Positions 5,306 to 61,911 of a DNA stretch of 64,000 nucleotides are shown in pieces. The stretch lies in assembly GCF_004010195.1 (NCBI RefSeq), contig NC_057726.1, positions 69,115,418-69,179,417 on the forward strand. The letters run 5' to 3'. This DNA is from Chiloscyllium plagiosum (taxonomy: Eukaryota). Within the stretch, counting starts at the first letter, position 1. Each line of letters starts with the position of its first letter. The notes under the pieces are model-generated. The model was not told where the DNA came from. It worked only from the letters and a program-made list of their open reading frames with translations, and did not search any database. The position numbers and the translations under genes are program-made.

Positions 5306-5360
5306 ATGCCGAAGTATCATTCACTATGGAGTGTCTGTCTGCTGTGCATCTTGTGTGCAG
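5306..5360 (+). pseudogene. Gene A leader exon
   Basis: MPKYHSLWSVCLLCILCA followed by phase-1 donor G|gtacat. Confidence 0.85.
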
Positions 5361-5677
5361 GTACATATTTCTTTTGCTGTGTATTAGCTGTTCATAATCA
5401 AGAAACAATGTGAACTTAAGGTTAGTTCGGATGTAAAAAGGATACATTGTATTATTGTTGTCCTTTTGTCGAGTCAAATATTCCCAGAACTAATTTAGTG
5501 GGTTTGTGGGAAGAAAATATGACATTCAATTAGGACAATAGTTTAAAAATTGGAGAATTTGTTGAACAGTAAAATATGGTAAATTGCTGTTGCATCAATA
5601 GCCTGGAATGATGATGTTATTTGAGTGTTGCAGACCGTTTTTCTTGTTTAATCTCGGTGTGTGTCCTTGGTTGACAG

Positions 5678-5988
5678 CAGCTGCTGGGGGTATTTCGGCC
5701 AAAGTGAATCCGGACCTTAAACAAATAACGGCACAGAGAGTTCAACAGCTGCCATGCTATGTCCTTTCTCCGACTAAGTCGATCATTCAAATGTTATCGC
5801 TTACTGGTGGAGAGAAGGTGATAAGACCTTTCTGCAGGAGGATAGCAGAAAGTTCTTCCGTATAGTTAAAGGAGCAGCCTATCTTAAACTTCTGAATGTG
5901 ACTGTCCAGGATGCTGGAACATATACCTGTGCAGTCAAGTCCGACCAGCGAACTCCGAAAGAAACTGCTGTGCAACTTACTGTGTATG
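5678..5988 (+). pseudogene. Gene A V-set exon, frameshifted
   Basis: NAGNAG acceptor; ...QQLPCYVLSPT, then a 1-nt loss at ~5776, then VDHSNVIAYWWREGDKTFLQEDSRKFFRIVKGAAYLKLLNVTVQDAGTYTCAVKSDQRTPKETAVQLTVY and G|gtaagt. Confidence 0.92.
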
Positions 5989-6164
5989 GTAAGTGTCCGA
6001 TAAACACAGAGACGTCGCTCCTGAGAAAAACAAGTAATGTTTACTGGATTGAGACATATCGTGTGAAATATTTACATTTATTTAAAATGAAATATGTTCA
6101 AGATTATTGAAACCGTAGAAAACCAGTGACATTACTAAGTTTCTGATTCTCTGTATTTAAAAAA

Positions 6165-6950
6165 ATCCCTTCTGGGACATGGGCATTGCTGGCTAGTCCA
6201 GCATTTATTGCCTGTCCCTAGTTGCTCTTGACAAAGTGGTGGGGAGCTGCATAAAATCACTGCAGTCGATATGCTGGAAATAACCCAAAATGCCATTTTG
6301 GAAAAAAATTACAAGATTTTGACCCAGTGACAGTGAAGGAACAGTGATGTGTTTCCATGTCAGGATGTTGAGTGGCTTGGGAGAGACTTGTAGCTGGTGG
6401 TGTTCTCATATACTTGCTGCCCTTGCCCTTCTAGATGTTAGTGATTGTGGGTTGTGTAGGTATTTTCTCAGGATCCTTGTTGAATTTCTGCAGTACACCT
6501 TGATGGTACACACTGCTGCTACTGAGTGTCTGTGGTGGAGTGATTGAATGTGGTGTCAATAAAGTGGGCAGCTTTTTAACCAGATGGTGTTAAACTTCTT
6601 GAGTGCTTCTGGACCTGCAGGCATACAGATAAGTGGGAAGCATTCCAACACACCCCCGACTTGTAGCTTGTAAATGCTGGACAGGCTTTGGGGAGTCAGC
6701 AGTTGAGTTACTTGCTGTAGTATTCCAAGTCTCCAACCCGTGGTTCAATTTATATGGCTCACCCAGTTCCGTTTCTACTCAGTGGTAACCCCCAAAATGT
6801 TGCTGATTCACTGATAGTGATTCCACTAAATGTCAAGACGTGATAGTTAGATTGTCTGTTCTTGGAGATGGTGTTTGCCTGGCATTTGTGTTGCATGAAT
6901 GTTACTTTCAACTTTTAAGCCCAAACCCAGTTCTTGCTGCATTTGGTCAT
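6165..6950 (-). mobile_element. Old CR1/L2-superfamily LINE 3' fragment
   Basis: Same family as 54600-57610: shared 3' end gctggcc/gtccagcatttattgcc and a degenerate RT C-terminus. Confidence 0.7.
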
Positions 6951-7397
6951 GGGTTGGTTCTGTTTTTTTTTTGCAATTAGCTTTTGCAGAGAAATTCATT
7001 GGGGTACTTTAATGTATTTTGGTTTGCATTTGAACACAGAGGGACAAGATGAATATCTGCAAAATTATGCATTTTTGACGTCCCTTAGCTCACGAGAACA
7101 GCCAAATCGTCAGTCCCATCACTTGGATGGTTTTAGCTAAATTCCCGGTATCGAGGTCAAATTCATCATTGTGTTTGTAAAGAAAGGTGCATTTTGATCC
7201 TATCATAATTTTATTTTAAGTCAGGACAAAGTCTGAAAACTCATTTTTCTATAAGTGCAGAAGGTATATTGAAAGGATTTTAGGATTTTTTAATGTGATA
7301 CATGTGACATTTTCATGCACTGTTCGTAACAGTAATTAATGCAACTGGTGTGCTGGAAGTATGTTGTTTTGGTCACTTAAAAATACATTTTTGCAGA

Positions 7398-7673
7398 AGA
7401 TTAGATTACATTACATTACAGTGTGGAAACAGGCCCTTCAGCCCAACAAGTCCACACCGACCCGCTGAAGCGCAACCCACCTATACCCCTACATTTACCC
7501 CTTACCTCACACTACGGGCAATTTAGGATGGCCAATTCACCTGACTTGCACCCAGAGGAAACCCACGCAGACACGGGGAGAACGTGCCAACTCCACACTC
7601 CTGAGGCGGGAATTGAACCCGGGTCTCTGGCGCTGTGAGGCAGCAGTGCTAACCACTGTGCCACCGTGCCACC
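7398..7673 (-). mobile_element. HE1/V-SINE-type tRNA SINE
   Basis: Reverse complement of ggcacggtggcacagtggttagcactgctgcctcacagc...ggttcaattccc (A/B boxes), with a (taatc)n tail. Confidence 0.92.
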
Positions 7674-7719
7674 AACGGTGAAAAGTCGGTTTGTCTAATT
7701 TGTGTTATTTTCCATTCAG

Positions 7720-8014
7720 CTTCACCAGCTCCTTTGAAAATTGTCTCTGTGCCATCTGAAGACCGTTTTTCTGCTTCTCTCAGACTCCAGTGCAGGACAT
7801 CTGACTTTTACCCAAAAACCTTTAACCTTACTTGGTATAAACATCTTGGCAGGATTTATGAATGAACAGCAGGCAAAAACTGAGGATCTTTATGAAGTCA
7901 TCAGTTCCTTAGAATTACAAGAGGCCGTTCAAAGTGGTACAGTTTACATGTGTCAAGTATATCATGTTTCAAGCTCATTTCCTGCAAATGCCAGCTACAC
8001 CATTACGAATAAAG
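7720..8014 (+). pseudogene. Gene A C1-set exon, frameshifted
   Basis: ttcag|; ASPAPLKIVSVP..LRLQCRTSDFYPKTFNLTWY, a shift at ~7839, then NILAG..LYEVISSLELQEAVQSGTVYMCQVYHVS..SYTITNK and G|gtaaca. C1 hallmarks CxxxxFYP, W and CxVxH are present. Confidence 0.92.
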
Positions 8015-8869
8015 GTAACATTTTATAATATGTGGTACATTAAATGCTCATATATGTTTCAGAATGGAAAAATAAGTAGGAATTGGTTATGGAAGTTATT
8101 TTATGTGATTATGTGAAAGTCAAAATTTGACTCCATTTAATGGATTAAAGTTTTCTTCCTTTGTGTTGTTTGAAACCGATATGTAGTTCTCACATGTAAC
8201 ATTACCAGAACTATTTAACATAGGTCACATACTTCTTTTTTTATATAGACTCAATACTCACAAACGACTGAAAGGTCAATGTTAATTCTTGAGAAAGAAT
8301 GCAAAGTATCGAATTTATGTTTTCCATGTACCTTCAATCATCCGGTAGTTTTGTTTATTTTCCCAATCATCAGAGTGCCACATATGTGATTACATACTCA
8401 ACATTAATACATAGCTGATTGGATCGTAGCTGCAGAGATTATAATTATTTTAACTGAACTTTACCTCCACGAGCAACTCAAGCAAATCTGAAAACAGGTT
8501 CCATTATATTTTTTCTGACTTTGATTTGCATGCAATGCAATCAAACTCCCACCAAATAGTATATCATTTTGCGACATAGGTTAGAGAACTGAGCACTTAT
8601 TGTAATTAGCTCTATTTCCATTAATTTTAAATTTGTCATTACTTGAGACACTTTTATCATATACCTGTTGCTTTAAATTCCAGATATTTGTTTCCAGCTG
8701 CATATCAGTTAAATAAAGAGACAACAAAATTGAAATGCACAGCATTTATGTGATATATTTATAATTTTTGCACGGCAACATAATTGAGAATGATCCTTAT
8801 GACATTTAAACCTGCGTATCTTCACTTTATAGTGCTATTTCTAATTTTGAATTTATATTAATGTTACAG

Positions 8870-8982
8870 ATTTTGCCTGAAAAATCAGTGTTCCAATGGT
8901 GGTTGGCTGTGCTTTCGTGCACTTGCAATTCTAATATTGACTGTGATGACGAGCCAGGGTTTTCTGTTCTTTAAATCCAAAG
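8870..8982 (+). pseudogene. Gene A transmembrane exon, degenerate
   Basis: tacag|; DFA*KISVPMVVGCAF, a shift, then ALAILILTVMTSQGFLFFKSK. The donor reads G|gcatga. Confidence 0.7.
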
Positions 8983-12403: not shown

Positions 12404-13282
12404 TTGTAGGTAACAGAATAAAGTCCTCGGGTATCCAGATGCAATGCTGAGCCTGTGTCTTATTGTTTGTTGAGCAGTGGATCAGAACAAGACAAAACAA
12501 AATTATTTATGGCTGAAAAATACCTCACAGATGACCAAAAGTATCTTTCAGAGCACTGAAGTTTTGTGATTTCCTGTTCAGACAAAAGTGTCCCCGGTTG
12601 TTGCATTTTTCATTGTCATTAACCTGAACATGTTCTTCCTTAAATAGTTGACCGATTTTCTAACTTAAAACATCAATAATTTACTTTAAAACATGCTGTC
12701 TGGCATTCAGTGTACCTTGTGAATTCTTTGGAAATGCACTTCAGATTTCAGTGCTTTTATTTATTACTGCTGAAATGACCTATTGAAATAATTACTTTCC
12801 TTTATTCATAAGGGAGCAAGTTGATTCTAAAATTAATTATCTATTATCAATGGTAAGTACAGTTCTTCCTTTTCTCTAATTGCGCTCATTTAATTAAGTT
12901 AATATGAGGGCACGTTCAGTCAAATCCTGCACCATATCCCCTCCAAATGAAAGACATAACTAATTTATTTCAAGTAATTGCCTCTTATAATTTTACTACA
13001 AAGCAATGTGACCTGCGATTTTTATTATTATTATTAACAAACACAGACAGATTTATATTTTGCTTCATTTAATAAACTGCACTGCATGCTCAATTTGTAG
13101 CAGAATGTAGTAAAACAGGAAGTCACATCTCAGAACTGAAATCTTGACTTTCTGGAGAAAACGAGAGATGCCTGAGGATAAGCTGACATTTGCTGCTCTT
13201 CATCTGGTTTGGTCTGAGGTATAGTCCCTAAACAACAGGAAGAAATCACAATGTATACAGAGGTACATTTCAGGTCGTTTAA

Positions 13283-14046: not shown

Positions 14047-14171
14047 ACAAAGCAGAGCATGACAGACAGCAAGCTTTACATCGCTTTAAAGTTCAATGAT
14101 TCCAGACTTCATCAAAACTCAAACACCAAGAAATCAGTCCAGTATATGAAGCAGTGAAAAGCAGCCACTAA
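14047..14171 (+). pseudogene. Gene A terminal cytoplasmic exon with tyrosine motifs
   Basis: ttttcag|TKQSMTDSKLYIALKFNDS; a shifted frame ends SPVYEAVKSSH*; AATAAA at 14181. Homologous to the last exon of gene B. Confidence 0.78.
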
Positions 14172-28056: not shown

Positions 28057-30876
28057 CTTGAGAGTAAAGTGTCACCATTTAATTGATTTCCTTAAAGATG
28101 TGAGAGGGGTGCAGTTACTAATGTGGCAGGTGACAAGGCTTGAAAGCTTCGCAGGGGAAAAAAAGGCATTTTCTGCCACAGATTTTCATCTTGCACTCAT
28201 CAGAACTATTTGCAAGAATGCCACTTCAAGGGGAAAACCAACATTTATACCGGATGAGAGGAGTGCTGATTAGTCGTCAATTGTTCACGGACTGGTGTAG
28301 ATGTTGTCATGGAATTGCTATGCCAACCACAAATATTGAATGACAGTTAACAGTTAGGCTTCAAAAACTGCGAATCCAGGCAGATTGGTACGAACTGAAA
28401 TCGAAAAATCGCACAACACCAGGTTATAGTCCAACAGGTTTATTTGAAATCTCTGAGAAATCGGCCAACAAAATCTTCCAATACTTTGTTCATTTGTGCA
28501 TTGTATGTGCACATATTCTTTCTGCCTGCAATGAACAATGCGCTATGTATCAATGGATATGTAAAGCTTTGAGTCCACAGAAGTGCACCAGCGAGTCTTT
28601 GCCTGCTGAGTCACCTGTTTAATGTTTTGTATCGTATGAAAACGTGAACTTGATATATAAACTTGAATGAGTTAAATCAAACTTGGAAAGTCATAATCAA
28701 AATGTCAAAATTTGTAGTACAATTTATAGCCCATGAATCAATACCCATGTAATGCTGTTGGAAATAAAGTTGAATGAAGTGTTGGAATAATTATGAATTC
28801 AGCTGTAATGATTTGATTGTATGTCATTCAGTAAATAAGATCAAGGATCTTCATAATCCATTCATATTGCTTTACATGCGTTTGATTTACATTTCTGTTG
28901 TTCATATATATATATATATATCAACATGGCATTACAGTGTAATTACTGAGAAAATTCTGAAGGAAATGAATATCAAGTTTCTTACAGTACACAAATATAT
29001 CATAACATTAAAGTATATTGCTGTCCGAATAAAGAAGGGGATATTCAGCCCTGCTGTCTTCTTAAAACTATTCATAAAACGCACGCTATTATCAACATTC
29101 ATTGTGCACTCAATCCGATAGGTGTATAAAGGTGTATAAATGCACCTTAAGGTGTATAAATGCCAGGTCTATGCGGATTGGTGTATGCACCTTAACTGTC
29201 AGATTTCTCTGGTTTGATCTGAAAAACAAAACTTTTTATTATGAGGATCTGTTTTAAACGACTATTCAAAAATCTGTTTAAGTGGTTTATATTCAAAGTG
29301 GTCAGAGTATCACAGACGTTAATGTTTTCGTTGATAAAGCTACCAAAACAATGAAATATTTTCACAGTCAAGAATGATGAAGAATGTTGGTGCTCTGAAA
29401 GTACAACCAATTACTCCAACTGACTTATCCCTTCTCCAAGTCACTGCAATTTTGCCCTGGAATTGACAGTCTCTTTAGAAGATTACCATTATAACTGCTT
29501 TCTCGAAATTTGTGAATAATGTATTGCAGATCAAGAGATGGAAAAACCAAGAATTTAATCATTTCATCCTGCTGCTTATTTGAAATCTTTGCGATCCGAT
29601 CGAAGGTTACCCGTGTACTAAAGTATATTTTGTCCTATCTACATCATCAAAGGCATCATAGCATAATTTCCTTTTACCCTTACTTTTATATAAAGGGTAT
29701 CAATTTCTGTGTTTTCTACTGTTGGCTGGGAGAAACAAAATCTTCTTAAGATCATATAAGTGAATTTCCAATACACATTTTTCACTGCAGATTGAATTTC
29801 CATTAGAAACAATAGCAATGCAGAACGCAACTTTGGGCGAAATCTGGGATCCCATCTTTCGCAGGAAGTGTCATTTCTCCTGCACCTTACGGATGGAGCG
29901 CGGGCCTAATTGAACAAATGGGGCAAAGCTCACGTTCGGAACACAAGAGGAGAACGACAAACACCAGAAAGAGTTTTTTTTTAATTGCCTGCACATGTCC
30001 GTTCTAGTTTATGTCCGTTCTAGTGTATTCAACACATTAAGGCTGTTGCCTGAAATAACTATCGGAAGTAGGATGAATAATAATTGGTTGTTTATCTAAT
30101 GGCGCCAATATTCCTTGATTTTTTTTTAAACAAGCAGTACAATATCGGATGTCTTTACAATTTAGTGATGATTGGTGATTTCAGAAGCTGTTTTCTTTTT
30201 CTTAATATCTGTTTCTCCCGATCTATTAACGTATTATTAACAACCTCTTAATGTTCTGGACGTGATATGGGTTGAATTCAGTCTTCGAAATCAAACTGTT
30301 TAGTTCATAATCTTTCTTCCTATTATGGATTTTGTTGAAGTTTAAAGAATTCTTGCGGTGTTTACACAGCTTTGATGTACTCTGGAGCACTGTGCACGTT
30401 TGGCTGTCTTCTTTACAGTAACGACCGGAGCAATATTTCAGGGAAATTGGTAACCTGCAGTGCAAGCGTACCTGTAAGTTTTGTGTGAAGTTGTGTTCTT
30501 CGCTCATTATTCTTCCACCTAAAATGCTTGAATAAACCATTTTCTGAAGTGAACTGTACCTTCTCCATCTTCCATCATCTCTGTATTCTATTTGATAAAC
30601 ATTGGGTCTAAAAGCATTGACCTTAATGGGCCTTGCTACAGACATTCCTCCAGTCAAAAAAAAGTCTATTTGTGAGTTCTTTCTTAAAATGACTATTTCA
30701 AATGCTACCAAATCATCTAGTAATTAATTTATTGGATTCCAAGGTTTAATGCACTTTAATATATTCAAACATGAAATGTCAGTTTGCATTGCATTAACTT
30801 TTATTACATGTTATTTTTCTTTAGTTGGATTTTAAAAATATCAGCCGCACCTGAGTTTAACTTGCATTAACTTCCT

Positions 30877-30951
30877 TCACAGGCTTCTCCCCGAGCCTGT
30901 GATATCCAAATCTGTGTAAACCTTGTTATTCTCTGTCATTCATTGTTTCGT
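30877..30951 (-). CDS. Gene B terminal exon, premature TGA before YxxL
   Basis: tttacag|TKQ*MTENNKVYTDLDITGSGRSL*; aligns with gene A TKQSMTDSKLYIALKFNDS. Confidence 0.8.
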
Positions 30952-32703: not shown

Positions 32704-32747
32704 CTGCTCATTGCGCTGATTGCACTCTTTCAGTTTTCTGCGTGTTC
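32704..32747 (-). CDS. Gene B cytoplasmic exon 1
   Basis: ctcatttag|GTRRKLKECNQRNEQ|gtaggc; 44 nt, phase 1-0. Confidence 0.8.
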
Positions 32748-33344: not shown

Positions 33345-33446
33345 CGATTCGCATGAGTTTGCATGTCACTATGAGGAGGGAAATCAATCCAACTCCCAAA
33401 CAACGGAAAAACGTTAGAGAAGAGATGTTATTGTTCCCGACATGAT
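33345..33446 (-). CDS. Gene B transmembrane exon
   Basis: ttcacag|DHVGNNNISSLTFFRCLGVGLISLLIVTCKLMRI G|gtaaga; 102 nt, phase 1-1. Confidence 0.85.
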
Positions 33447-35781: not shown

Positions 35782-36890
35782 ATAGAACATAGAACATAGA
35801 AGAATACAGCGCAGTACAGGCCCTTCGGCCCTCGATGTTGCGCCGATCCAAGCCCACCTAACCTACACTAGCCCACTATCCTCCATATGCCTATCCAATG
35901 CCCGCTTAAATGCCCATAATGAGGGAGAGTCCACCACTGCTACTGGCAGAGCATTCCATGAACTCACGACTCACTGAGTAAAGAACCTACCNNNNNNNNN
36001 NNNNNNNNNNNNNNNNNNNNNNNNNNNNNNNNNNNNNNNNNNNNNNNNNNNNNNNNNNNNNNNNNNNNNNNNNNNNNNNNNNNNNNNNNNNNNNNNNNNN
36101 NNNNNNNNNNNNNNNNNNNNNNNNNNNNNNNNNNNNNNNNNNNNNNNNNNNNNNNNNNNNNNNNNNNNNNNNNNNNNNNNNNNNNNNNNNNNNNNNNNNN
36201 NNNNNNNNNNNNNNNNNNNNNNNNNNNNNNNNNNNNNNNNNNNNNNNNNNNNNNNNNNNNNNNNNNNNNNNNNNNNNNNNNNNNNNNNNNNNNNNNNNNN
36301 NNNNNNNNNNNNNNNNNNNNNNNNNNNNNNNNNNNNNNNNNNNNNNNNNNNNNNNNNNNNNNNNNNNNNNNNNNNNNNNNNNNNNNNNNNNNNNNNNNNN
36401 NNNNNNNNNNNNNNNNNNNNNNNNNNNNNNNNNNNNNNNNNNNNNNNNNNNNNNNNNNNNNNNNNNNNNNNNNNNNNNNNNNNNNNNNNNNNNNNNNNNN
36501 NNNNNNNNNNNNNNNNNNNNNNNNNNNNNNNNNNNNNNNNNNNNNNNNNNNNNNNNNNNNNNNNNNNNNNNNNNNNNNNNNNNNNNNNNNNNNNNNNNNN
36601 NNNNNNNNNNNNNNNNNNNNNNNNNNNNNNNNNNNNNNNNNNNNNNNNNNNNNNNNNNNNNNNNNNNNNNNNNNNNNNNNNNNNNNNNNNNNNCTTTCCC
36701 CTCGTCCACCTCCTTCGTCACCTTCTCAAAGAATTCAATAAGGTTTGTGAGGCACGACCTGCCCTTCACAAAACCATGCTGACTCTCCTTGATCACATTA
36801 TTCCTATCCAGATGTTCATAAATCCTATCCCTTACAATTCTCTCTAAGACTTTGCCCACAACAGAAGTGAGAAGTGAGACTCACCGGCCT
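35782..36890 (-). mobile_element. Young CR1 LINE spanning an assembly gap
   Basis: (ttctatg)n tail and [30 protein letters not shown]; near-identical to the copy at 45074-47667. Confidence 0.93.
35992..36693. other. Assembly gap (N run)
   Basis: Run of n. Confidence 1.
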
Positions 36891-38766
36891 TTCAATCTAA
36901 TTAATTCTTATCCTTCTAAACTCAAATGGGTAAATCACCTTATCTCGTGTGGTAACCGTTTTAATCAGGAATTAGTTGACTGGACATTATCTGAGCTGAT
37001 TTTAAAGCAATTGTACACTTTTTCCACTGTGGAGACTAAAATTCAAAATACAGTCTGACAAGTCAAGAAAAATCCCTGACGCTGCAACCACTCCTACCCC
37101 CTGCACCCATGCACATCACCACACAAAGCACCACTTTTTTTATGCTCTGTTCCCCGTTCAATTAAAGCCGAAATACTTTTGGCCTTCCTAAAGACTTCCT
37201 TTGCCATGGAAACACATTAGACTGTAGTGAGCACAATCTACATAAGGCACTGCGACAACTCGTGTTATCTGGTTCAAGAACATCTTTCAAATTCACATTC
37301 CTTACACCTAGCATAGACATTGGGAAGAGATAGGAAACATTTACGTTGGGAAGGCCATTACGTTCCAGTGTGTGCCGCCAATTCAAACATAATTGAGACT
37401 GGGATCTAATCACTGTTCATTTTAGAGTCAGTATAACGGACCTTTTATTTGCTGCACAGCACCTCGGGTATGGGGTAAACAGGCAGCAAAGGCAAAATCT
37501 GAGCCAACGGTCTCATTGGCAAGGGAAATGAAGTCAGGATACATTCAGGTCATGGAAGAAAAATAGCCTTTCCTGGAAAGAAAAGAAATTGAAAAGGAAA
37601 ATTTTAAACCGGAAATGACTTTTCTGAATGGAGAGTCGTCCCTGATATTTCTACAGTAGGCTAAATAGTTCCATGACAGGGAAAAGCGAGTGTCACATCT
37701 GAAACATGAATTAGTCCTCCCTTTGCATGGAACTGATAGCTGTACAAATAGGCTTCATATCAAACGCTGTCAAGTCTGAGTATTCATATCGACTTGTCTG
37801 ATTTGGATTCAGGCATTTTCTAGTGCAGGCTGTTATTAAAACTCGACATTTCGTCTTTGCTCAAAATGAGCTGCTGCAATTGCCATATCCAGTGTTAAGC
37901 TTTCGAATAATATAATAATATTATATTATTAGGAAGTCGAGAAAAAGCCACACTGAAAGGTTATTACCAAAGTTATCCCCCTCCCCAACACTCCCCCCCC
38001 CCCCCCCCCCTTAACTTTGCAGCTAGAATTCGAACTTGATTACTATAACCGAGCCCTGGGCACTCTGAGGCTAACCTCTGATGATGCAATTGCCGAAGAG
38101 TGGAAAAGCTTTTTTTACATATAGAAAGCTGAGACTTTGAAACGAATACACCAGGTCGATATCTGTATCTGAGAGGATGAGAAACTTTGCTAATATATTT
38201 TTTAGAAGATGAATTCTTTTCAATTTCCCATGAAACTTACAACTTTCATAGATTTTCAATACAGACGAACAGTGGTTGGGGATTGACTCATAACTAACAT
38301 CAACTGCAAGTACTTGTCTCCACAATGGCCCTTAATAACCTTTCCTAATGAGACGCACCAAACTTAAATTTCAAAATGATGGACTCGTACCAAGTTAATC
38401 TGTGATCTAATCGATCGGGCAAATAATAACCAATGGGTGTAAAAATGACTCATGCGTGGTATTCCTGGGTGTCAGCTAATGTTTGAATGACATTGAATCA
38501 TACAAGTCTGCAGCACAGTGAAAAAGCTGTTAAGTCACTCATCATGCCCGCCCTTGTCAAAAATTGCCACCTCATCACTCTCATCCCATTTCCCAGCAGC
38601 TGGCATCGCAAAAGGAAATCTAAATACTTCTAAGATGTTTTGAGGATATCTGTCTGTACCGCCCTTCCAGGCAACCAGTTCTAGATTCCCACCACCCTTT
38701 GGGTGAAACAAACATTTTCCTCACATCTCCTCTCTACTTTTAATCGATGTCTCCCTGCTCAATAAT

Positions 38767-39977
38767 CCCTGTATCAAGGGGAAAAAATGTCTTCCTGTCT
38801 ACCCTATCTTCGCTCCTCATAATTTTATACATCTCAATCATGTCACATCTCCATTTCTTCTGCTCGAAGGAAAACATACGAAGTCTGTCCAATCTCCATT
38901 CATAAGCGAAACTGTCCAGTCCAGGCAACATCCTGGTAGATCTCTTCTGCAATCTCCCCAGCCCGATAACATCGCTGGTGTAATATCGATTCAGAACTGT
39001 CCACAATACTCGAGCAGTGGCTTCAACAACGGTTCAGACAGTTCCACTACAGCCTCCCCTCTCTTAAACTCATGTCTCCACTAAGAACAGCAAGTATCCT
39101 AAATATTTTCTTAACCACGTTTTCCAACTGCACTAATACATTCAGGAACCGGCTGAAAATGTGCAACAAGCTCCCTCTGATTCCAAGTTCCTACCGCTCA
39201 ACATGTCCTGTATCCCCTTGCCCGTTAGTCCATCCCAAATACGTCACCTCACATTATCCAGGCCATTGGACCCACACCCCTCTATCCTCTTTCAATTTTC
39301 TCTTATTCTTCAACTATAAAAATAGCGCCGGATTATGGCAACAAATGGCAGCTTTTCGTTGCATTTTATTGCCCTGTATCAAGGGGAAAAAATGTCTTCC
39401 TGTCTACCCTATCTTCGCTCCTCATAATTTTATACATCTCAATCATGTCACATCTCCATTTCTTCTGCTCGAAGGAAAACATACGAAGTCTGTCCAATCT
39501 CCATTCATAAGCAAAACTCTCCTGTCCTGGCAACAGCCTGGTAGATCTCTTCTGCAACCTCCCCAGCCCGATAACATCGCTGGTGTAATATCGATTTCAG
39601 AACTGTCCACAATACTCGAGCAGTGGCTTCAACAACGGTTCAGACAGTTCCACTACAGCCTCCCCTCTCTTAAACTCATGTCTCCACTAAGAACAGCAAG
39701 TATCCTAAATATTTTCTTAACCACGTTTTCCAATTGCACTGATACATTCAGGAACCGGCTGAAAATGCACAACAAGGTCCCTCTAATTCCAAGTTCATAC
39801 CGCTCAACATGTCCTGTATCCCCTTGCCCGTTAGTCCATCCCAAAGACGTCACGTCACATTTTCCAGGCCATTGAACCAACACCCCTCTATCCTCTTTCA
39901 ATTTTCTCTTATTCTTCAACTATAAAAATAGCGCCGGGTTATGGCAACAAATGGCAGCTTTTCGTTGCATTGTATTG
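38767..39977. repeat. ~605-bp tandem duplication of an old minus-strand CR1 fragment
   Basis: 38767-39371 and 39372-39977 are highly similar with scattered substitutions. Confidence 0.95.
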
Positions 39978-40263
39978 TATTCCATTCATTCTTGCAATCT
40001 GCGGTTATCCTCTTCATTAACTCACCCACCAAATTCTGTGTCATCTGAGAAGTTACTGATTCAAGTCTAAATCTTTTCTATAATCCACAAACAGCAAGGT
40101 ACCCCACACTCACCTCTCTGGGATAACCCTATAAAAATTGACGTTTAGTCGGATAAACACCCCTCACCCATCACAGTCTCTTGTTGCAAAGCGGGATTGG
40201 TGGTATGCTCATTTTCTAAGCAAATTAGAATACAACAAAATTAATATAATTGAATGAACCTAC

Positions 40264-40566
40264 CCTATTTATTGAAAGTGTAGCTGACATTGACTGGCGT
40301 CTGCAGTGAGATGTGAGACACTTCACAAGTGTAAACGGTACCGCTCTGAACGGGTTCTGTCTCAGTCAGTTTGCTGGAAACCTCATAGAGGCCGATTGCA
40401 TTCTGCAATTTGACATGTTCCATCCCGGTTGCAATTTCTGAATCATTTTTGTACCACGTGATATTCAGGTTGTCTGGGGAAAATGCAGCAGTTGTGCAAA
40501 GAAGAGTTAGAGGGAAAGCTGAGCCGTTCTCCGGCAGTTTGACCAGTTGGAGTGGAGTCGGAGGGA
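40264..40566 (-). pseudogene. Gene B C1-set exon with dead acceptor and terminal stop
   Basis: VPPTPLQLVKLPENGSAFPLTLLCTTAAFSPDNLNITWYKNDSEIATG..GLYEVSSKLTETEPVQSGTVYTCEVSHISLQTPVNVSYTFNK*. The acceptor reads tttcg|, and TAG at 40267-40265 precedes G|gtaggt. Confidence 0.92.
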
Positions 40567-41264
40567 CGAAACAAAAAGAAAAGGAAACGTTTGTTTTGAA
40601 GCCTGCATTTAATTTGAAAAAGGTGAAGCAAATTCTACCACAAGGTCAAGCAGAACCAGACAACCATAAAAATCATGCAATTAAATCGGTGTTTAATAGG
40701 GGATACCTCACAGTTTAAAACAATCTGCTGGTTCATTTCGAAGAAAAAGCGGAAATGTTCATCAGCGCCGAATTACAAACATTTAAAGGGGAAACGTTCT
40801 AACGAATATCGCAGTTTTCACATCATAGAGTGTAATTGTTGTTTTAAATTTTGCATTGGCAAATGCCTTCGTGTCAATCCCTGAAATTAATGAATTGCTT
40901 ATTTCGTTGTCTTAATATTTTCACATTTTCCTCAAGTACTCAGATATACAAAGCATTATATTTCGAATGTTTGTTCCAATTTTAAGATGTGCAGTCATTC
41001 AGTGCAATTTTCTTTCCGGGAATAGGATCATTGTGTTCCAATATTTAAGGAGATCACATTTGACACCACAACAAAAATTCTTCACTCAAATCACAGGAAG
41101 TGGATATTATAAACTGAGTTAAACTTGCACTCAACAAATAAACTCGGTGGAAGTACATGTGAAGTTTCAGTAAATACGTTCTCGTGTTCATTTGGAACCT
41201 CGCATTTCTTGAACGAGGTATCTGTTGGAGGCCACCTCTAATAACAAGGGCCAGACTGGGTTTG

Positions 41265-41670
41265 TGCGCGTGAAATATAGAGGATTGAGAGGCGACTTTA
41301 TGGAATTTTAGCCGATTCTTGGAGGATTTACATTATAAATGCAGAAAAATTGTGTACCCTTGTGGGAGAGACTGGGACCAGAGAGCAACACCTCAGAATA
41401 AGAGGTCGCTTATTTAAGACAGAAATAAGGTGGAAACTGTTCTGTCACAGGGTCGAGAGTATGCAGAATTATTTTCCGCAGCATGTGGTTGAGATTTGGT
41501 TTGTAAGTACATTCCATGCTGGGCTAGACAGATTTTTGATTGCTGACTAGTTCAAGGCCCATCGAGAAAAGGCGGGAAAGTAGAGCTGGGGATGATCCGA
41601 TCACCGATGATGGCATTGACTGGCGGAGCAGACCCAAACGGTCTACCCCCGCACCTCCGTCTTATGGTGT
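41265..41670 (+). mobile_element. Old CR1 3' fragment in the V-C1 intron of gene B
   Basis: RRLRGD and ETGTREQHLRIRGRLFKTE motifs. Confidence 0.75.
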
Positions 41671-41800
41671 TAAAATCGGAACAAAAAATTGCAAATTCTT
41701 TCTTTGTAGATTAGATCCACACTTTAAAAATTATTCCGATTAATGCCTTAAATCCAATTGCACAACCAACGCAGTATTTTCCCTTCTCCTTGATCCTTAC

Positions 41801-42112
41801 CGAACACGACCAGGTTGGTGCCGGTTCCGTTTGCAGCCACATTGTGTGTCACTCTGCAGTAATAAACCCCAGCGTCCTCCAATCTTATATCCGCCAGTTG
41901 TAAGACAGCTCCTCCCCAATTGAGGGAAAAAAGCTGGATCTTGTGGTCCAAAATTTCCTCCAAGAACCCATCTCTCCCATCTCTGCACCACTGCACTTTC
42001 ACTGGCTTCTTGTCTTGAAAGATGGGGAAAATGCAATAAAGTTTAACCAAGGCGCCTCTGGTGACAGCGCACTCTCGATCTTGTCTCACCATCAACTGAG
42101 AATTGTGAGAGG
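41801..42112 (-). CDS. Gene B germline-joined VJ-type Ig exon (open frame)
   Basis: ASHNSQLMVRQ..VKLYCIFP..VQWCRDG..GAVLQLADIRLEDAGVYYCRVTHNVAANGTGTNLVVF and G|gtaagg. The acceptor is a T-rich tract followed by gtgcaaaag|. Confidence 0.93.
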
Positions 42113-42318
42113 CTTTTGCACAAAAAAAACACAGTTTTCAAGACCTAACAATCGAATTAGACAATCCAACTAACAATCCGAGAAGATGTTAGGATGCAAC
42201 GCATATATCAAAAAAAATCAGCAACAAGAAAGGCTAAATAAAGCTTTATTATGTATTAATCATTAACAAATTGAAAGAACGGTCATCGTTTGGAAAGAAG
42301 AACATGGAATACATTTAC

Positions 42319-42370
42319 CTGTGTAACTGATCAATAACATGGTCGTGCAGTGAAGTAAGGCTCTGAGCAT
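42319..42370 (-). CDS. Gene B leader exon
   Basis: MLRALLHCTTMLLISYT followed by G|gtaaat. Confidence 0.88.
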
Positions 42371-42450
42371 CTTGAGCAGCTGAACTGAAGTGATCGTTTG
42401 CATTGCTATGTGTAATATATACAAATTCAAAACAACTGACGAGAAGATGG

Positions 42451-42492
42451 TTGGTTTCAGATGCGTCTGTCAGTACGTCAGTTTTGGTGACG
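42451..42492 (-). promoter_or_regulatory. CRE-like half sites plus GAAACCA motif upstream of gene B
   Basis: TGACGTA (42480-42474, minus strand), TGACG at 42488 and gaaaccaa, 80-120 nt upstream of the ATG. Confidence 0.4.
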
Positions 42493-42844
42493 TTTGAGAT
42501 TTCTCCCTGCCCATTCACAGGAAACTATCTATATCCTGTACTCACCATTGTCCCTACATGATAAACGCTAAAGGTACCCCTCAGCTACTTTTAAATTTAT
42601 TATTTGCATTTTTGCTGCGGCGACTCAGAAAGGATTCCGTGAACGGTTCCATGATGTATCTCACTGAATGAAGGACTGGATGCTCTGATCTCTTGCTCAA
42701 GCAGCATATCATGATGACAGCTGATCCCCATAATTCAGGCACTGTAGACAAACTCTATTCAGTGTGTGATGTTTGATGCAACTTTCGATGTTCGTTTCAT
42801 TGGATGCCACCAGCTGCTGATAGTTGCTCTACCTATTGTTAGTT

Positions 42845-45073: not shown

Positions 45074-47667
45074 TTGGGTAACGAACCAGGCCAGGTGTTA
45101 GAATTAGAGGTAGGTGAGCACTTTGGGGATAGTGACCATAATTCGGTGTTTTTAATTCTCGTGATGGAGAGGGATAAGTGTGTACTACAGGGCAAGAGTT
45201 ATAGCTGGGGTCAGGGAAATTATGATGCGGTGAGGCATGACTTAGGATGTGTGGCTTGGAAAAGTAGACTCCAAGGCAAAAGTGTAAATGATATGTGGAG
45301 CTTGTTCAAGGAGCAACTATTGAGTGTCCTTGATAATTATGTACCTGACAGGCAGGGAGGAAAGGGTCGTGCGAGGGAGCCGTGCTTTAATAAGGAATTG
45401 GAATCCCTTGTTAAATGGAAGAGGGCGACCTATCTCAAGATGAGACGTGAAGGTTCAATTGGGGCGATTGAGAGTTATAGGGTAGCCAGGAAGGACCTGA
45501 AGAGAGAGCTAAGAGCAGCAAGGAGGGGACATGAAAGGTCCTTAGTCGGTAGGATTAGGGAAAACCCAAAGGCTTTCTATAGGTATGTTAGGAATAAAAG
45601 AATGACTAGGGTAGGAATAGGTCCAGTCAAGGATAGTAGTGGGAAGTTGCGTGTGGAGGCGGAAGAGATGGGGGAGACACTGAATGAATACTTTTCTTCA
45701 GTATTCACTCAGGAACAGGGCATTGTCGATGAGAATACTGAGGCACAAATAAGTAGAATGGATGGCTTTGAGGTATATAGAGAAGAGGTGTTGGAAATCC
45801 TGGAAAACGTGAAAATAGATAAGTCCCCTGGGCCTGATGGCATTTATCCTAGGATTCTCTGGGAAGCAAGGGAGGAGATTGCAGAGCCATTGGCCTTAAT
45901 TTTTATGTCCTCTTTGTCTACAGGAGTAGTCCCAGAAGACTGGAGGATAGCAAATGTGGTTCCCTTGTTCAAAAAGGGGAGTAGGGATAGCCCTAGTAAC
46001 TATAGGCCGGTGAGTCTCACTTCTGTTGTGGGCAAAGTCTTAGAGAGAATTGTAAGGGATAGGATTTATGCACATCTGGATAGGAATAATGTGATCAAGG
46101 ATAGTCAGCATGGTTTTGTGAAGGGCAAGTCGTGCCTCACAAACCTTATTGAATTCTTTGAAAAGGTGACGAAGGAGGTTGATGAGGGAAAAGCGGTAGA
46201 TGTGGTGTATATGGATTTTAGTAAGGCATTTGATAAGGTTCCCCATGGTAGGCTACTACAGAAAATACGGAGATATGGCATTGAGGGTGAGTTGGAGGTT
46301 AGGATTAGGAATTGGCTGGATGGAAGAAGACAGAGGGTAGTAGTTGATGGCAAAGTTTCTTCATGGAGTGCCGTCACTAGCGGTGTTCCGCAAGGATCTG
46401 TTTTGGGACCATTGCTGTTTGTCATTTTTATAAATGACATGGAAGAGGGGTTAGAAGGTTGGGTAAGCAAGTTTGCGGATGANNNNNNNNNNNNNNNNNN
46501 NNNNNNNNNNNNNNNNNNNNNNNNNNNNNNNNNNNNNNNNNNNNNNNNNNNNNNNNNNNNNNNNNNNNNNNNNNNNNNNNNNNNNNNNNNNNNNNNNNNN
46601 NNNNNNNNNNNNNNNNNNNNNNNNNNNNNNNNNNNNNNNNNNNNNNNNNNNNNNNNNNNNNNNNNNNNNNNNNNNNNNNNNNNNNNNNNNNNNNNNNNNN
46701 NNNNNNNNNNNNNNNNNNNNNNNNNNNNNNNNNNNNNNNNNNNNNNNNNNNNNNNNNNNNNNNNNNNNNNNNNNNNNNNNNNNNNNNNNNNNNNNNNNNN
46801 NNNNNNNNNNNNNNNNNNNNNNNNNNNNNNNNNNNNNNNNNNNNNNNNNNNNNNNNNNNNNNNNNNNNNNNNNNNNNNNNNNNNNNNNNNNNNNNNNNNN
46901 NNNNNNNNNNNNNNNNNNNNNNNNNNNNNNNNNNNNNNNNNNNNNNNNNNNNNNNNNNNNNNNNNNNNNNNNNNNNNNNNNNNNNNNNNNNNNNNNNNNN
47001 NNNNNNNNNNNNNNNNNNNNNNNNNNNNNNNNNNNNNNNNNNNNNNNNNNNNNNNNNNNNNNNNNNNNNNNNNNNNNNNNNNNNNNNNNNNNNNNNNNNN
47101 NNNNNNNNNNNNNNNNNNNNNNNNNNNNNNNNNNNNNNNNNNNNNNNNNNNNNNNNNNNNNNNNNNNNNNNNNNNNNNNNNNNNNNNNNNNNNNNNNNNN
47201 NNNNNNNNNNNNNNNNNNNNNNNNNNNNNNNNNNNNNNNNNNNNNNNNNNNNNNNNNNNNNNNNNNNNNNNNNNNNNNNNNNNNNNNNNNNNNNNNNNNN
47301 NNNNNNNNNNNNNNNNNNNNNNNNNNNNNNNNNNNNNNNNNNNNNNNNNNNNNNNNNNNNNNNNNNNNNNNNNNNNNNNNNNNNNNCGTATGGAGTCAGC
47401 TATTACGAGGGGGCATAGCTTTAAATTAAGGGGGGTAGATATAGGACTGAAGTTAGGGGTAGGTTCTTCACTCAGCGAGTCGTAAGTTCATGGAATGCCC
47501 TGCCAGTAGCAGTGGTGGACTCTCCCTCTTTATGGGCATTTAAGCGGGCATTGGATAGGTATATGGAGGATAGTGAGTTAGTATAGGTTAGGTGGGCTTG
47601 GATCGGCGCAACATCGAGGGCCAAAGGGCCTGTACTGCGCTGTATTCTTCTATGTTCTATGTTCTAT
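45074..47667 (+). mobile_element. Young 5'-truncated CR1 LINE, ORF2 open up to the gap
   Basis: ~470 uninterrupted codons ([40 protein letters not shown]) and a (ttctatg)n tail. Confidence 0.97.
46483..47386. other. Assembly gap (N run)
   Basis: Run of n. Confidence 1.
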
Positions 47668-51879: not shown

Positions 51880-51886
51880 ACACTAT

Positions 51887-54666: not shown

Positions 54667-54785
54667 AGATTAGATTAGATTAGATTAGATTACAGTGTGG
54701 AACGGCCCAACAAGTCCACACCGCCGAACCCGGGTCTCTGGCGCTGTGAGGCAGCAGTGCTAACCACTGTGCCACCGTGCCGCCC
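54667..54785 (-). mobile_element. Internally deleted SINE (tRNA head fused to tail)
   Basis: Head and (taatc)n tail present; central domain missing. Confidence 0.85.
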
Positions 54786-56160: not shown

Positions 56161-57939
56161 GACATACTTGGTCAATTTTTAACATTGTCGGGTAGATGCC
56201 AGTGCTGTAGCTGTACTGGAACAGCTCAGCTACGGGAGAAGCAATTTCTGGTTGACAAGTCTTCAGTGCTGATGCTGGAATGTTGTCAAAGTCTATATAG
56301 CCTTTGCAGTATCCAATGCCTCCAACCATTTCTTGATATCACGTGAAGTGGATTGAATTGGCTGAAGACTGAATGATAGGAATTGCTGGATGAGGCCATG
56401 ATGAATAAGTCACTCGGCACTTCTGGTTGAAGATTGCTACGATTCCCTCAGCCTTATCTTTTGCATTAATGTGCTGGGGTCTTCCATCATCGAGGGGTAT
56501 ATTTGTTGAGTCTCCATCTCCAGTGATTTATTTAATCATCCACCACCGTTCACAACTGGCAGGACCGCAAAGTTTAGATGTGATCTGTTAGTCATGGGAA
56601 CACTTAGATCTGTCTACCACTTTCTGCTTATGTTGTTTTGCATGCATGGAATTCTGTTTGGTGGCTTCACCGTGTTGACATTCCATCTTCAGCTATGCCT
56701 GGTGCTGCTGCTGGCATGCCCTCCTGCACTCGCCATTGAACTAGGATTAATCCCCTAGCTTGATGGCATTGGTTGAGTGGGGGATATGCCGTGCCATGAG
56801 ATGACAGATTGTACTGGAGTACAGTTTTATTGTTATTGATCATCCACAGTGCCTCAAAGATGCCCAGTCTTTAGTTGCTAGATCTATTCAAAGTCCCATT
56901 TAGCACACTGATATTGTCACACAACACAATGGAGATTTTTCTCAATGTGAGGGTGGGACTTCGTTTCCACAAGGTCTGTGTGGTTGTCAGTATTATCAAT
57001 ACTGTTGTGGATAGATTGATAAGGATAAGGTCAAACATGTTTTTCTCTCTTGATGGTTCCATCACCACCTGCAACAGATCCAATCAAGTAGCTATGCCCC
57101 TTAGGACCCGACCAAATCAATCAGTAGTATTGCTGCTGAGCCACTGTTGGTGATGGACATTGAAATCCCCCACCCAGAGTACATATTGTGCCCTTGCCAT
57201 CCTCAATGCTTCCTCTAAGTGATGCCACCATGGACCAATATTGATTCATCAGATGAGAATGACTGTATGCGGTAATCAGCAGGAGATTTCCTTAACTATG
57301 TGGAGTTGAAGTCTTGAGCCTTCGTGGGTTCGGCAGTCAGTGTTGACGACTCCCTGAGAAACTCCCTTTCGACTGTACAGCACTGTGCCACCACCTCTGC
57401 CAGGTTTGTCCTGATAGTGGGACAAGGCATTTCCAGGATGGTGTTGAGTGGTGCCTGGGACATTGTCAGTAAAGAATGAAACAATGAGTATGACTAAGGC
57501 AGACTGTTGCTCGAATAGTCTGTGAGATTGCTTTCCCAATTTTGGCACTGGCACTGAGGTGTTAGTAAGGAGGACTTTCCAGGTTTGACAAGGGTCGTTC
57601 TACCATTGTCTGTTCCGGTACCTGGCTTGTACAATAAGAATCCAATCGCACATGCAGCAGGTTGATGGAAAATGTGGATGGCTAGAGGAAGAATAGAGGC
57701 AGAGGTAACACAGCGAGAAGACCGAGAACCAGCTGAACATCTGAGTTCAAAATACTACATGATCAGTGCGTTAAATACCAGATGTTAGGGAAAAACAAAA
57801 AATTGAAAGGAATAAGCAAATTCTGAGCAGGTGCATAAGGGAATTCTTATAGTTGATTTGGAATCAAGTATAAGTAAAAGTGATTATGAACTGATGAAAG
57901 GTCCGTCGGAACACACTCATGCACTAATATACACATAGA

Positions 57940-60460: not shown

Positions 60461-60569
60461 CGGGTACATGTCAATGAATGCACCTAGTTATCAGCAGTAC
60501 TCTGTACCAGTACATAGGTCAGCAGCAGGAAAAGAACTGCTAACATTGCGCAATTGCTAGTAAAGTTCT

Positions 60570-60826
60570 ATTGAATCCCTACAATGTGGAAACATGCCAT
60601 TCGGCCCAGCAAACCCACAACGACCCTCCCCAACTTCACATTTTCCTGACTAAAGCACTTAGCCTTCATACTAAGCGCTTTGCATTGCCAATTCACCTAA
60701 GATGTACATCTTTGGATTCTGGGGGTAAACCAGAGCAACCAGAAGAAACTCGCGCAGACACAGGGAGCATGTGCAAGCTGCACACAGTGAGGCAGCATTG
60801 CTAACCACTGAGCCATCGTTCCGCCC
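60570..60826 (-). mobile_element. HE1/V-SINE-type SINE (older copy)
   Basis: Diverged SINE consensus. Confidence 0.8.
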
Positions 60827-61254
60827 TGGAAATATATGCTTGGCAGTTAGCAGAATCGTTTCCCCCAAAGAATTATTGTTTCGAGACAGACATTTGCTGA
60901 ATATTTTGTTTACTTTTGGATGATGTTCCTTTCCATGCTTTCCATGAATGCCGTAAGAACTGCTTCTCAGTTACAGAGTGCCAGATCAGCTGGGTGTCAG
61001 TCACGGTGTCGCGGACTCAACACCAAATCACCATTCCTTCAAAAAGAATCATGGTGCCACCGAGACGAACAGCTGAGTTTCCACAGCATACAGCCGTCTG
61101 AAAGCCCGAAGGTGCAGTCAAACTGGTTAATTTCACAATCTGTCAAGAGCTACAGCAATGCAGAAATGTTAAATGGATGTAGAAATGTTCCATATTGTGG
61201 TTAAAGGTTAATGAAAGGTGGGTGGTTTGAAGTTCCACAACGTGCTGTCAACTC

Positions 61255-61275
61255 TGACGTCAAACAGAAACCACA
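61255..61275 (+). promoter_or_regulatory. Perfect CRE plus RUNX consensus upstream of gene C
   Basis: TGACGTCA at 61255-61262 and AACCACA at 61269-61275, ~150-170 nt before the ATG. Confidence 0.55.
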
Positions 61276-61426
61276 GCCTTGATGTTGGAGATTCAGTTAT
61301 ATTTGCTCAGATTTATTGCAACACCCTGAATAGCATTTAATCTTCTAGTGCCTCTATCCATGCCACACTTTTATGACTTTTTTCAGTGACTGAAGAAAAG
61401 GTTTGAGTTCATCGAATTTGATCAAA

Positions 61427-61481
61427 ATGTATGGAATTGCAATATCTTGTTACCTGTCAATCTTCGGCATTTTCTACACAG
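61427..61481 (+). CDS. Gene C leader exon
   Basis: MYGIAISCYLSIFGIFYT followed by G|gtatac. Confidence 0.9.
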
Positions 61482-61590
61482 GTATACAAAATAAAACTTG
61501 TTTGATAAATAGCAAAGTTAGCAAAGATTGTGTGGAGAAATTTACTTCGAATCCACGCTTACATTTGTGCGTTTCTTCTTTTTCTGACAG

Positions 61591-61911
61591 ATGCCAACGA
61601 AACCCCTTTCTCTGTGACTCAAGTCCCCGCATGCCTGACTGAAGTGGAAGGTATAAATGTGTCCATGTATTGTTCCATTCCGCTATTCTCTCACAACCCA
61701 GCAGTAGACGTTTACTGGCAGAAAGGCGACCAGGGCAAAACTTTGGATCTGACTGCGGACCAAAGGAAAATAATGTTACCATTCAAGCAAGGATCCACTG
61801 AGCTCCAACTGGTCAATCTACATTTCCAGGACTCTGGAATCTATTATTGCAGCATTAGGGTCTCTGGCAGGAAGGTTTTCAATGGAAATGGGACAAGGCT
61901 GATCGTACATG
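61591..61911 (+). CDS. Gene C germline-joined VJ-type Ig exon, intact; gene continues beyond the window
   Basis: ttctgacag|DANETPFSVTQ..VSMYCSIP..VDVYWQKG..ELQLVNLHFQDSGIYYCSIRVSGRKVFNGNGTRLIVH G|gtgagt. Confidence 0.95.

Follow-up and report, generated by a model that had tools for sequence, protein, structure and literature searches.

Germline-joined VJ-C1 receptor genes in Chiloscyllium plagiosum and their probable membership of a chondrichthyan-wide multigene family

Introduction

Immune receptors with a variable (V) domain already joined to its J segment include CD79, NITR, SIRP, CD8, NKp30 and PRARP (PMC11599192, accessible part). The accessible part of PMC10751288 names NKp30 and PRARP as VJ genes of the major histocompatibility complex (MHC) and describes UrIg as a novel VJ-C1 gene. 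The accessible part of PMC12227049 describes UrIg and UrIg2 and names NCR3 as the other MHC-linked VJ gene of sharks that does not rearrange. There, UrIg2 is given nine to eleven constant (C) domains and an IgM-like transmembrane region, and the V and J of the shark immunoglobulin (Ig) light chain lambda are joined in the germline. In cartilaginous fish, non-rearranging VJ-C1 genes bear on the origin of antibodies and T-cell receptors (TCRs), prior to the splitting of a V exon by the RAG transposon. Here, we describe three such genes, which we call A, B and C, in a stretch of 64,000 nucleotides from Chiloscyllium plagiosum (RefSeq assembly GCF_004010195.1, contig NC_057726.1, positions 69,115,418 to 69,179,417 of the forward strand). 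This whole stretch is called the window, and all coordinates below refer to it.

The explanation that we favour, and regard as quite likely, is that the window holds three members of one family of type I membrane receptors, with gene A as an old pseudogene, gene B most likely dead and gene C maybe functional. An earlier note on the same sequence had described three paralogs, two of them with C1, transmembrane and tail exons, and had suggested a birth-and-death family of innate or natural killer (NK)-type receptors that resembles the ancestor of the rearranging antigen receptors.

Results and Discussion

A multigene family of cartilaginous fish

We searched the whole 64 kb with 17 full-length family proteins (tblastn) and found exactly five Ig exons of the family: V (5700-5987) and C1 (7656-8034) of gene A, C1 (40250-40636) and V (41799-42128) of gene B, and V (61536-61913) of gene C. 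A scan for Ig motifs also placed V-like and C-like exons at three places in the window. When the three genes were compared at the DNA level, they shared repeats only, and their relatedness needed comparison at the protein level.

For relatives elsewhere, we queried 1.84 billion representative proteins with the C1 core of gene B using HMMER. This gave 761 matches at E ≤ 1e-3, of which 241 reached 1e-10 and 11 reached 1e-30. Among the best 150 matches, which were the ones listed, were many proteins of 200-450 amino acids with a single C1 domain at about residues 120-220 and 45-67% identity, as well as multi-C1 proteins, whose scores are summed over domains. Members come from Callorhinchus, Heptranchias, Heterodontus, Scyliorhinus, Cetorhinus, Mustelus, Chiloscyllium, Hemiscyllium, Mobula, Leucoraja and Amblyraja, so that the family spans Holocephali (chimaera), sharks and batoids (rays). 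Their names in the source databases are automatic and inconsistent, ranging from SIRP-alpha-like, SIRP-beta-like, NCR3 ligand 1-like and tapasin-related-like to Ig lambda-like, CD276 homolog, MHC-like and uncharacterized. Word-indexed protein searches returned relatives as 2 of 10, 15 of 1944 and 10 of 93 candidates, none with a curated name. The earlier note implied more novelty than remains, as intact relatives are already predicted in the public annotation of at least 13 chondrichthyan species, and shark VJ or VJ-C1 genes that do not rearrange (NCR3, UrIg and UrIg2) are in print (PMC12227049 and PMC10751288, accessible parts). The window brings no new kind of gene.

Sixteen full-length members align as a leader, a VJ domain (..NGTGxxLxV), a C1 domain beginning with VPPTPLK, a transmembrane segment (LIxGCAGGGL...) and a tail of tyrosine repeats of the type xxYAxLxL...EERTVYAQTKQ...TYAxL...xYAxx. 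All 16 match both the C1-set and the V-set of Pfam. Genes A, B and C very probably belong to this chondrichthyan-wide multigene family with its order of leader, VJ, C1, transmembrane segment and tail.

One V and one C1 domain were found in 79 of the 204 stored proteins, a count that includes near-identical isoforms. The strict motif GxG[TS]x[LIVM]x[VI] is present in 67 of these 79 and a transmembrane segment in 60. At least one motif resembling an immunoreceptor tyrosine-based inhibitory motif (ITIM) occurs in 34 of the 79, and at least two in 22. We then divided 67 stored proteins with a clear transmembrane segment by charge, a crude screen that misfiled at least three proteins (P0117, P0163 and P0092) whose charge lies just outside the membrane. 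Those with Arg or Lys at the start of the segment (22 of 67) have a median tail of 24.5 amino acids after the hydrophobic core and ITIM-like motifs in seven cases; in the remaining 45 the median tail is 107 amino acids, and ITIM-like motifs occur in 32.

An alignment of 15 proteins of the Arg/Lys class revealed two kinds of Arg transmembrane segment. The first, R(F/L)xL..(L/V)V.L..T.IIVDH(V/L)K, directly follows the C1 domain and is separately conserved in nine proteins from several lineages (P0002, P0185, P0116, P0168, P0171, P0027, P0063, P0051 and P0100). The second is the usual segment with Gly replaced by Arg before the Cys (P0112, P0140 and P0099), and gene B is of this kind. We considered whether the C-terminal segment of P0002 could be an artefact of intron read-through and dropped this idea because the same Arg segment is conserved in nine proteins. 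The segment of P0002 starts with the residues that read-through of the C1 donor would give (G|GTAGGT to G-R-F), and for this reason one gene may give both Arg and long-tailed isoforms.

In intact relatives, the V domain would bind a ligand. The long tails with repeated ITIM-like tyrosines would recruit SH2 phosphatases and inhibit the cell, while the short-tailed Arg members would pair with an adaptor carrying an immunoreceptor tyrosine-based activation motif and activate it. Two such signalling types would follow the pattern of paired inhibitory and activating receptors, with partners that are putative. The NK-type role proposed earlier is plausible in this form, as an innate paired inhibitory and activating role suggested by the ITIM-like motifs and the short-tailed Arg members.

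Three old lineages

We next determined how the three genes are related to other family members. The C1 tree contains 97 rows (89 from the family and eight outgroup domains) and was computed as a quick IQ-TREE run with support from the Shimodaira-Hasegawa-like approximate likelihood ratio test (SH-aLRT) only. It leaves out 16 isoform or duplicate ids, rows with fewer than 85 model positions and rows with more than one C1. The outgroup comprises two lungfish SIRP-like domains, four from multi-C1 proteins that are likely UrIg2-like, and two Ig-light-like domains. Family and outgroup are split at an SH-aLRT of 95. Gene B pairs with P0004 of Chiloscyllium punctatum (99) within a group (88) that holds Heptranchias, Heterodontus, Callorhinchus and three ray proteins. 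Gene A pairs with P0128 (97) in a starred group with P0143 of Heterodontus, and the relatives of gene C make up a starred clade with 12 members.

The V tree, built from 63 rows, agrees with this: gene B falls in a starred set of five, gene A in a starred set of four, and gene C pairs with P0001 (99). The eight outgroup V domains do not lie on one side of a branch in this tree, where several long branches meet. Genes A, B and C thus occupy three different starred clades in both trees. The lineages are old, as each of the three genes groups with other shark orders and the group of gene B also includes rays, and therefore the genes are not recent tandem copies. In C. punctatum, P0001 and P0004 carry consecutive locus tags on contigs of 24,194 bp each, which we read as conserved adjacency of genes B and C.

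Domain class and rearrangement signals

The V exons of genes B and C match the Pfam V-set (4e-9 and 2.4e-12). The second Ig exon of gene B scores 2.3e-12 (47.5 bits) for the C1-set, against 0.005 (17.2 bits) for C2-set_2 and 13.9 bits for the I-set. A model of this exon, built with ten relatives, has a mean predicted local distance difference test score of 87.1, and every top Foldseek match is the membrane-proximal Ig domain of an MHC class II chain (TM-score 0.72-0.87, probability 1.0). The exon is a C1-set domain by Pfam and by its predicted fold, as the earlier note held, and the C2 or I-set outcome did not occur.

The absence of recombination signal sequences (RSSs) was borne out as well, with no CAC[AT]GTG heptamer at any of the three V exons and their flanks (5600-6100, 41700-42200 and 61500-62000). 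The whole window contains nine weak RSS-like sites with six of nine nonamer positions, where mononucleotide shuffles predict 0.82, and none adjoins a V exon. Three of them (7660, 44522 and 54771) inflate this count: they consist of CACAGTG and one common weak nonamer at 23-nt spacing, and the stretch around 7660 is a 98% match to 54726-54784. The common nonamer and this match suggest copies of one repeat. The other six (30394, 31332, 34337, 37025 and two at 56851) lie in introns, long interspersed nuclear elements (LINEs) or intergenic DNA. None of the three genes is predicted to rearrange.

A profile of the family V domain gave generic V and VJ matches among solved structures, including pIgR, and its best full-length single-domain matches were the V domains of TCR alpha and Ig light chains with their J. 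NKp30 and SIRP were outside its best 60 chains of solved structures. Single-sequence and V-only structure searches were dominated by multi-domain proteins (titin, contactin and pIgR), and a search of the ESM Atlas returned generic V-set clusters only. The proposed likeness to the ancestor before RAG is one of architecture only; the V-only profile is generic and reveals no special affinity.

These V matches, together with the germline-joined V and J of shark Ig light chain lambda (PMC12227049, accessible part), could be taken to mean that the family is an offshoot of rearranging antigen receptors that became joined secondarily. We consider this very improbable. The family has transmembrane and tail modules of its own and is present in chimaera as well as in sharks and rays, no split or RSS-bearing member was found among the stored proteins or in the window, and the family C1 clade lies apart from the Ig-light-like and multi-C1 outgroups.

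Genes C and A

Gene C lies on the plus strand, and only its 5' half, leader and V, is inside the window. The leader (61427-61481, 55 nt) ends in ...FYT with a phase 1 donor. The VJ exon (61591-61911) is intact, with 321 nt, phase 1-1 and the J-like strand GNGTRLIV, and is 93% identical to P0001 of C. punctatum. It is open, has a good acceptor and donor, and holds the F and G strands in one exon (YYCSIRVSGRKVFNGNGTRLIVHG). No C1 or other further exon was found in 61912-64000 with tblastn of the 17 family proteins. Gene C may be functional.

Exons of genes A and B were matched by tblastn with intact relatives, P0143 for gene A and P0162 and P0009 for gene B. P0143, from Heterodontus, is the closest full-length match of gene A in tblastn and in the trees. 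The plus-strand leader of gene A (5306-5360) has an ATG, 55 nt and a phase 1 donor, equal in length and phase to that of gene C. Its V exon (5678-5988) is broken: the length of 311 or 308 nt is not divisible by three, the two halves are read in different frames with the switch near 5738-5745, and TAA stands in frame at 5775-5777. The match to P0143 (60% identity over residues 40-122) includes a stop. The J-like strand is degenerate (ETAVQLTVYG), and likewise in P0143. The C1 exon (7720-8014, 295 nt) is frameshifted near 7839-7843, and its second half alone matches the Pfam C1-set at 0.0023. The transmembrane exon (8870-8982, 113 nt) is 41% identical to the corresponding region of P0143, has a TGA in the incoming phase and carries GC at the donor GT position. 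In the frameshifted cytoplasmic exon (13119-13262) the motif tyrosine is now Phe (LTFAAL), and the last exon (14047-14171) is frameshifted relative to P0143. Five of the six exons found carry frameshifts or stops, and the leader alone is spared. By these lesions, gene A is an old pseudogene.

Gene B

Gene B lies on the minus strand. Its leader (42319-42370, MLRALLHCTTMLLISYT) has a phase 1 donor and is 59% identical to the leader of P0009. We rejected another candidate leader, at 42774-42736, which matches the leader of gene A in tblastx: it lacks both an ATG and hydrophobicity, and 42370-42319 is the stretch that matches P0009. The VJ exon (41801-42112) is intact, with 312 nt, phase 1-1 and the J-like strand GTGTNLVV. 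It is open, with a good acceptor and donor and the F and G strands in one exon (YYCRVTHNVAANGTGTNLVVFG).

The C1 exon (40264-40602) is 92% identical to P0004 of C. punctatum, has a C1-set fold and has lost its acceptor. P0002 and P0004 splice ...LIVH|VPPTPL at the corresponding site; in gene B the usual acceptor before VPPTPL has changed from AG to CG (40568-40567), and the nearest upstream AG would begin the exon at 40602. A TAG (40267-40265) stands one codon ahead of the donor, at a position that is Leu in the C. punctatum protein. In the intron just beyond (40263-40200), we noted a decayed match, with stops, to the first kind of Arg transmembrane segment. The sequence AATAAA, a poly(A) signal that might conceivably allow a secreted V-C1 form, occurs at 40268-40273 in gene B and at 8008-8013 in gene A, in each case as the last two codons of the C1 exon (Asn-Lys) directly before the donor.

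The transmembrane exon (33345-33446) is intact, with 102 nt and phase 1-1. It encodes FFRCLGVGL, with the Arg of FFRCLG in place of Gly; P0009 and P0162 of the same lineage keep Gly and long tails. A short cytoplasmic exon of 44 nt follows (32704-32747, GTRRKLKECNQRNEQ). The last exon (30857-30951) is decayed, with a TGA (30942-30940), a frameshift and a TAA (30859-30857). It reads TKQ-stop, and the TAA sits at the position of the last tyrosine of relatives. The exon for the first tyrosine motif was not found with tblastn of intact relatives.

The last exon holds three lesions in about 95 nt, compared with none in the roughly 510 nt of leader, V, transmembrane and short exon together. Therefore, the tail would have been lost long before the C1 lesions arose. 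In the order that we propose, loss of the tail and gain of the transmembrane Arg would have come first, followed by loss of C1 splicing and the stop. Inhibitory members of the family can apparently become short-tailed Arg forms in this way. Gene B appears to be a formerly long-tailed gene that is most likely dead now.

Part of the gene B stretch was present in 20 sequencing runs, none of them recorded as RNA, and we aligned four on 40100-42600. Two of them, RNA by our guess, yielded four short contigs, of which three lie in the V-C1 intron of gene B. The contig at 41795-42006 extends 6 nt beyond the V donor and is therefore unspliced. Two single-cell RNA runs gave no reads on 40100-42600, with 2-6% of each run examined.

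An alternative to a dead gene B is a living one, converted to an NKp30-like activating receptor by splicing the V exon directly to the transmembrane exon and skipping C1. The phases would allow this: the V donor is phase 1, the transmembrane exon 1-1 (102 nt), the short exon leads from 1 to 0, and TKQ-stop follows in phase 0. Every splice site needed for the route is intact, the Arg of gene B is at the same place (before the Cys) as in the short-tailed P0112, P0140 and P0099, and the predicted tail of about 25 amino acids is close to the Arg-class median of 24.5. Nevertheless, no such transcript was seen in the four runs aligned, and splicing to the cryptic AG at 40604-40603 could instead retain C1 and lead into the TAG. 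Gene B is also more similar to its C. punctatum counterpart in C1 (92% identity) than in V (about 80%), which argues for recent lesions rather than long-term skipping of C1. Among the 79 one-V proteins, only P0172, a fragment of 91 amino acids, could lack a real C1; V-only members were not findable in this set because its proteins were chosen for a C1 match, most of them from the C1 query. We consider a living gene B of this kind unlikely.

A wider version of the same idea, which we likewise rate as doubtful, is that the family is an undescribed chondrichthyan-wide paired-receptor system in which gene B records a conversion from an inhibitory to an NKp30-like receptor. VJ-C1 may then be combined with either of two membrane modules, an inhibitory transmembrane segment with a SIRP-alpha-like tyrosine tail or the Arg segment (R..L...V.L..T.IIVDH.K), which, in some genes at least, seems to arise when reading continues past the C1 donor into the intron. 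If so, the steps recorded by gene B would be Gly to Arg in the membrane, truncation of the tail and loss of C1, and gene B would offer a living model of how NKp30 arose from an ancestor resembling an antigen receptor.

Decay of two neighbours

Returning to three family members of which two are disabled, the lesions of genes A and B might instead be assembly or sequencing errors, with all three genes functional V-C1 receptors. Assembly gaps are nearby, and single-base indels are common in long-read error. Still, gene A has at least six independent lesions in five exons, and they are of different kinds: indels, one nonsense substitution, the GC donor and the change from Tyr to Phe. In gene B, two substitutions (AG to CG and the TAG) are joined by two further stops, one frameshift and the lack of an exon, and the one contig over its V exon (41795-42006) has no differences from the window. 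Such errors are a far-fetched explanation.

These results agree only in part with the earlier gene descriptions. The paralogs were found where expected, with five Ig exons, of which those of genes A and B belong to disabled genes and that of gene C to a gene half inside the window. A single phase 1-1 V exon that includes the G strand is intact in genes B and C, and the layout is broken in gene A; the J-like GxGTxLxV in B and C and its degenerate form in A are as described. The C1, transmembrane and tail exons of A and B exist, with all of those in A broken, the C1 and last exons of B damaged and one tail exon of B not found. Genes A and B cannot be upheld as working V-C1 receptors, given their frameshifts and stops and the lost C1 acceptor. 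On the other hand, two dead or disabled genes among three neighbours, from three old lineages, fit the prediction of a birth-and-death family. We conclude that this single-C1, tyrosine-tailed family turns over by gene death.

Several points weigh against our interpretation. The lesions of genes A and B are known from the letters of the assembly alone. The coding parts of the V, transmembrane and C1 exons of gene B are still open, and gene B may therefore be less than fully dead. In the four runs we saw no spliced RNA, from which neither expression nor silence follows. The signalling roles are predicted from motifs. Finally, the distinctness of the family depends on eight outgroup domains, and mammalian SIRP, TCR, NKp30, tapasin and B7-H6 are absent from the trees.

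Genomic context

The window is repeat-rich vertebrate DNA with many LINE reverse-transcriptase fragments. It contains two assembly gaps. Gap 1 (35992-36693) is a run of N within a LINE copy in the C1-transmembrane intron of gene B. Gap 2 (46483-47386), a run of N within a LINE ORF2, lies between genes B and C. On its right, gap 1 is bordered by a reverse-transcriptase open reading frame (ORF) on the minus strand. The flank to its left (35782-35991) and the one to the right of gap 2 (47458-47667) share 95% identity. The left part of the LINE ORF at gap 2 matches RVT_1 at 5e-27. By the matching flanks and the reverse-transcriptase content, both gaps interrupt copies of one LINE family. Neither gap is touched by any exon, and the exon order and strand of gene B are consistent across gap 1.

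In the same intron of gene B, a LINE-tail segment of about 600 nt is duplicated in tandem (38740-39919), with the same ORF twice. Apparent copies of a short interspersed repeat lie at 7398-7673, 54672-54784, 60572-60825 and 63330-63580. At the left end of the window, on the plus strand, overlapping ORFs of retroviral-envelope type (54-1356) contain a CWVCGG-like motif and, in the second ORF, a CX6CC-type motif. They score 21.8 bits for Pfam TLV_coat, slightly below the cut-off of 22.5, and resemble a fragment of an endogenous retrovirus.

Comparison with known systems

Finally, we compared the family with described receptors. No known family appears to absorb genes A, B and C as plain orthologs in the trees or profiles, and this is seen against a thin sample of only eight outgroup domains. 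Literature searches gave no open text on a single-C1 VJ receptor family of sharks, which reflects the limits of the library searched and is not proof of absence. Against solved structures, the full-length family profile aligned over the whole of V-C1 chains: Ig heavy chains, Ig light chains, UrIg2, SIRP alpha and SIRP gamma. UrIg2 scored 9.1e-35, SIRP alpha (2wng) 5.4e-29 over residues 4-205, and light chains about 1e-24.

UrIg and UrIg2 of elasmobranchs resemble the family in having a split leader and a non-rearranging VJ exon followed by C1-type domains. A C1-only profile matched Ig constant regions, heavy chains and UrIg2, and UrIg2 (9dmx) is also the top solved-structure match of the gene B C1 exon (3.6e-14, summed over three domains). 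UrIg differs in its three C domains and in being secreted, while in the family a transmembrane exon directly follows the single C1. Neither UrIg nor UrIg2 has the tyrosine-motif tail or the Arg partners of the family, and the C1 tree places multi-C1 proteins apart from the family.

TCR chains and Ig light chains share the two-domain VJ plus C1 ectodomain. The family genes differ in having no RSS and no separate J segment, with V encoded in the germline by one exon. Unlike in TCR and Ig light chains, their tails carry tyrosine motifs of their own, putatively for signalling.

The NITRs of teleosts follow the same working logic, as fast-evolving multigene V(J) receptors with ITIM-tailed and charged-transmembrane forms. 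Their second domain is not known to be C1-set, and they are known from bony fish.

SIRP alpha, beta and gamma share with the family a VJ-type V domain, C1-set domains, a transmembrane segment, and inhibitory long-tailed and charged short-tailed partners. SIRP alpha 2wng is the best match of the full-length profile outside Ig and UrIg, with V and C1 in one stretch, and the four tail tyrosines of SIRP alpha resemble the alternating TYAxL and EYAxxQ-type motifs of the family. Of 30 named single-C1 family proteins, 12 are called 'tyrosine-protein phosphatase non-receptor type substrate 1-like' or SIRP-beta-like in NCBI or UniRef, either alone or next to another name. However, SIRPs have two C1 domains, compared with one in the 79 stored proteins above, the C1 domains of the lungfish SIRP-like proteins do not join the family clade, and identity between SIRP and the family is about 30%.

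The shark NCR3 (NKp30) family is, like ours, a divergent multigene family of cartilaginous fish with a non-rearranging, single-exon VJ domain, and both have an N-glycosylation site within the J-like strand (NGT). PMC12227049 lists the nurse shark NCR3 proteins under GenBank MT914154-MT914161. Human NKp30 consists of a V domain only, to which our family adds one C1. An Arg in the transmembrane segment, to be expected of an NKp30 orthologue, occurs in gene B and part of the family, and the match of NKp30 to gene C covers the F-G strands only (E 6e-4). The abstract of Kinlein et al. (2021) reportedly describes eight highly divergent, MHC-linked shark NCR3 subtypes, which would agree with the many lineages in our trees. 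On this basis, we lean slightly towards that family and ours being one and the same. If the published NCR3 family is a different one, genes A, B and C belong to a large family that is annotated, unnamed and deserving of description.

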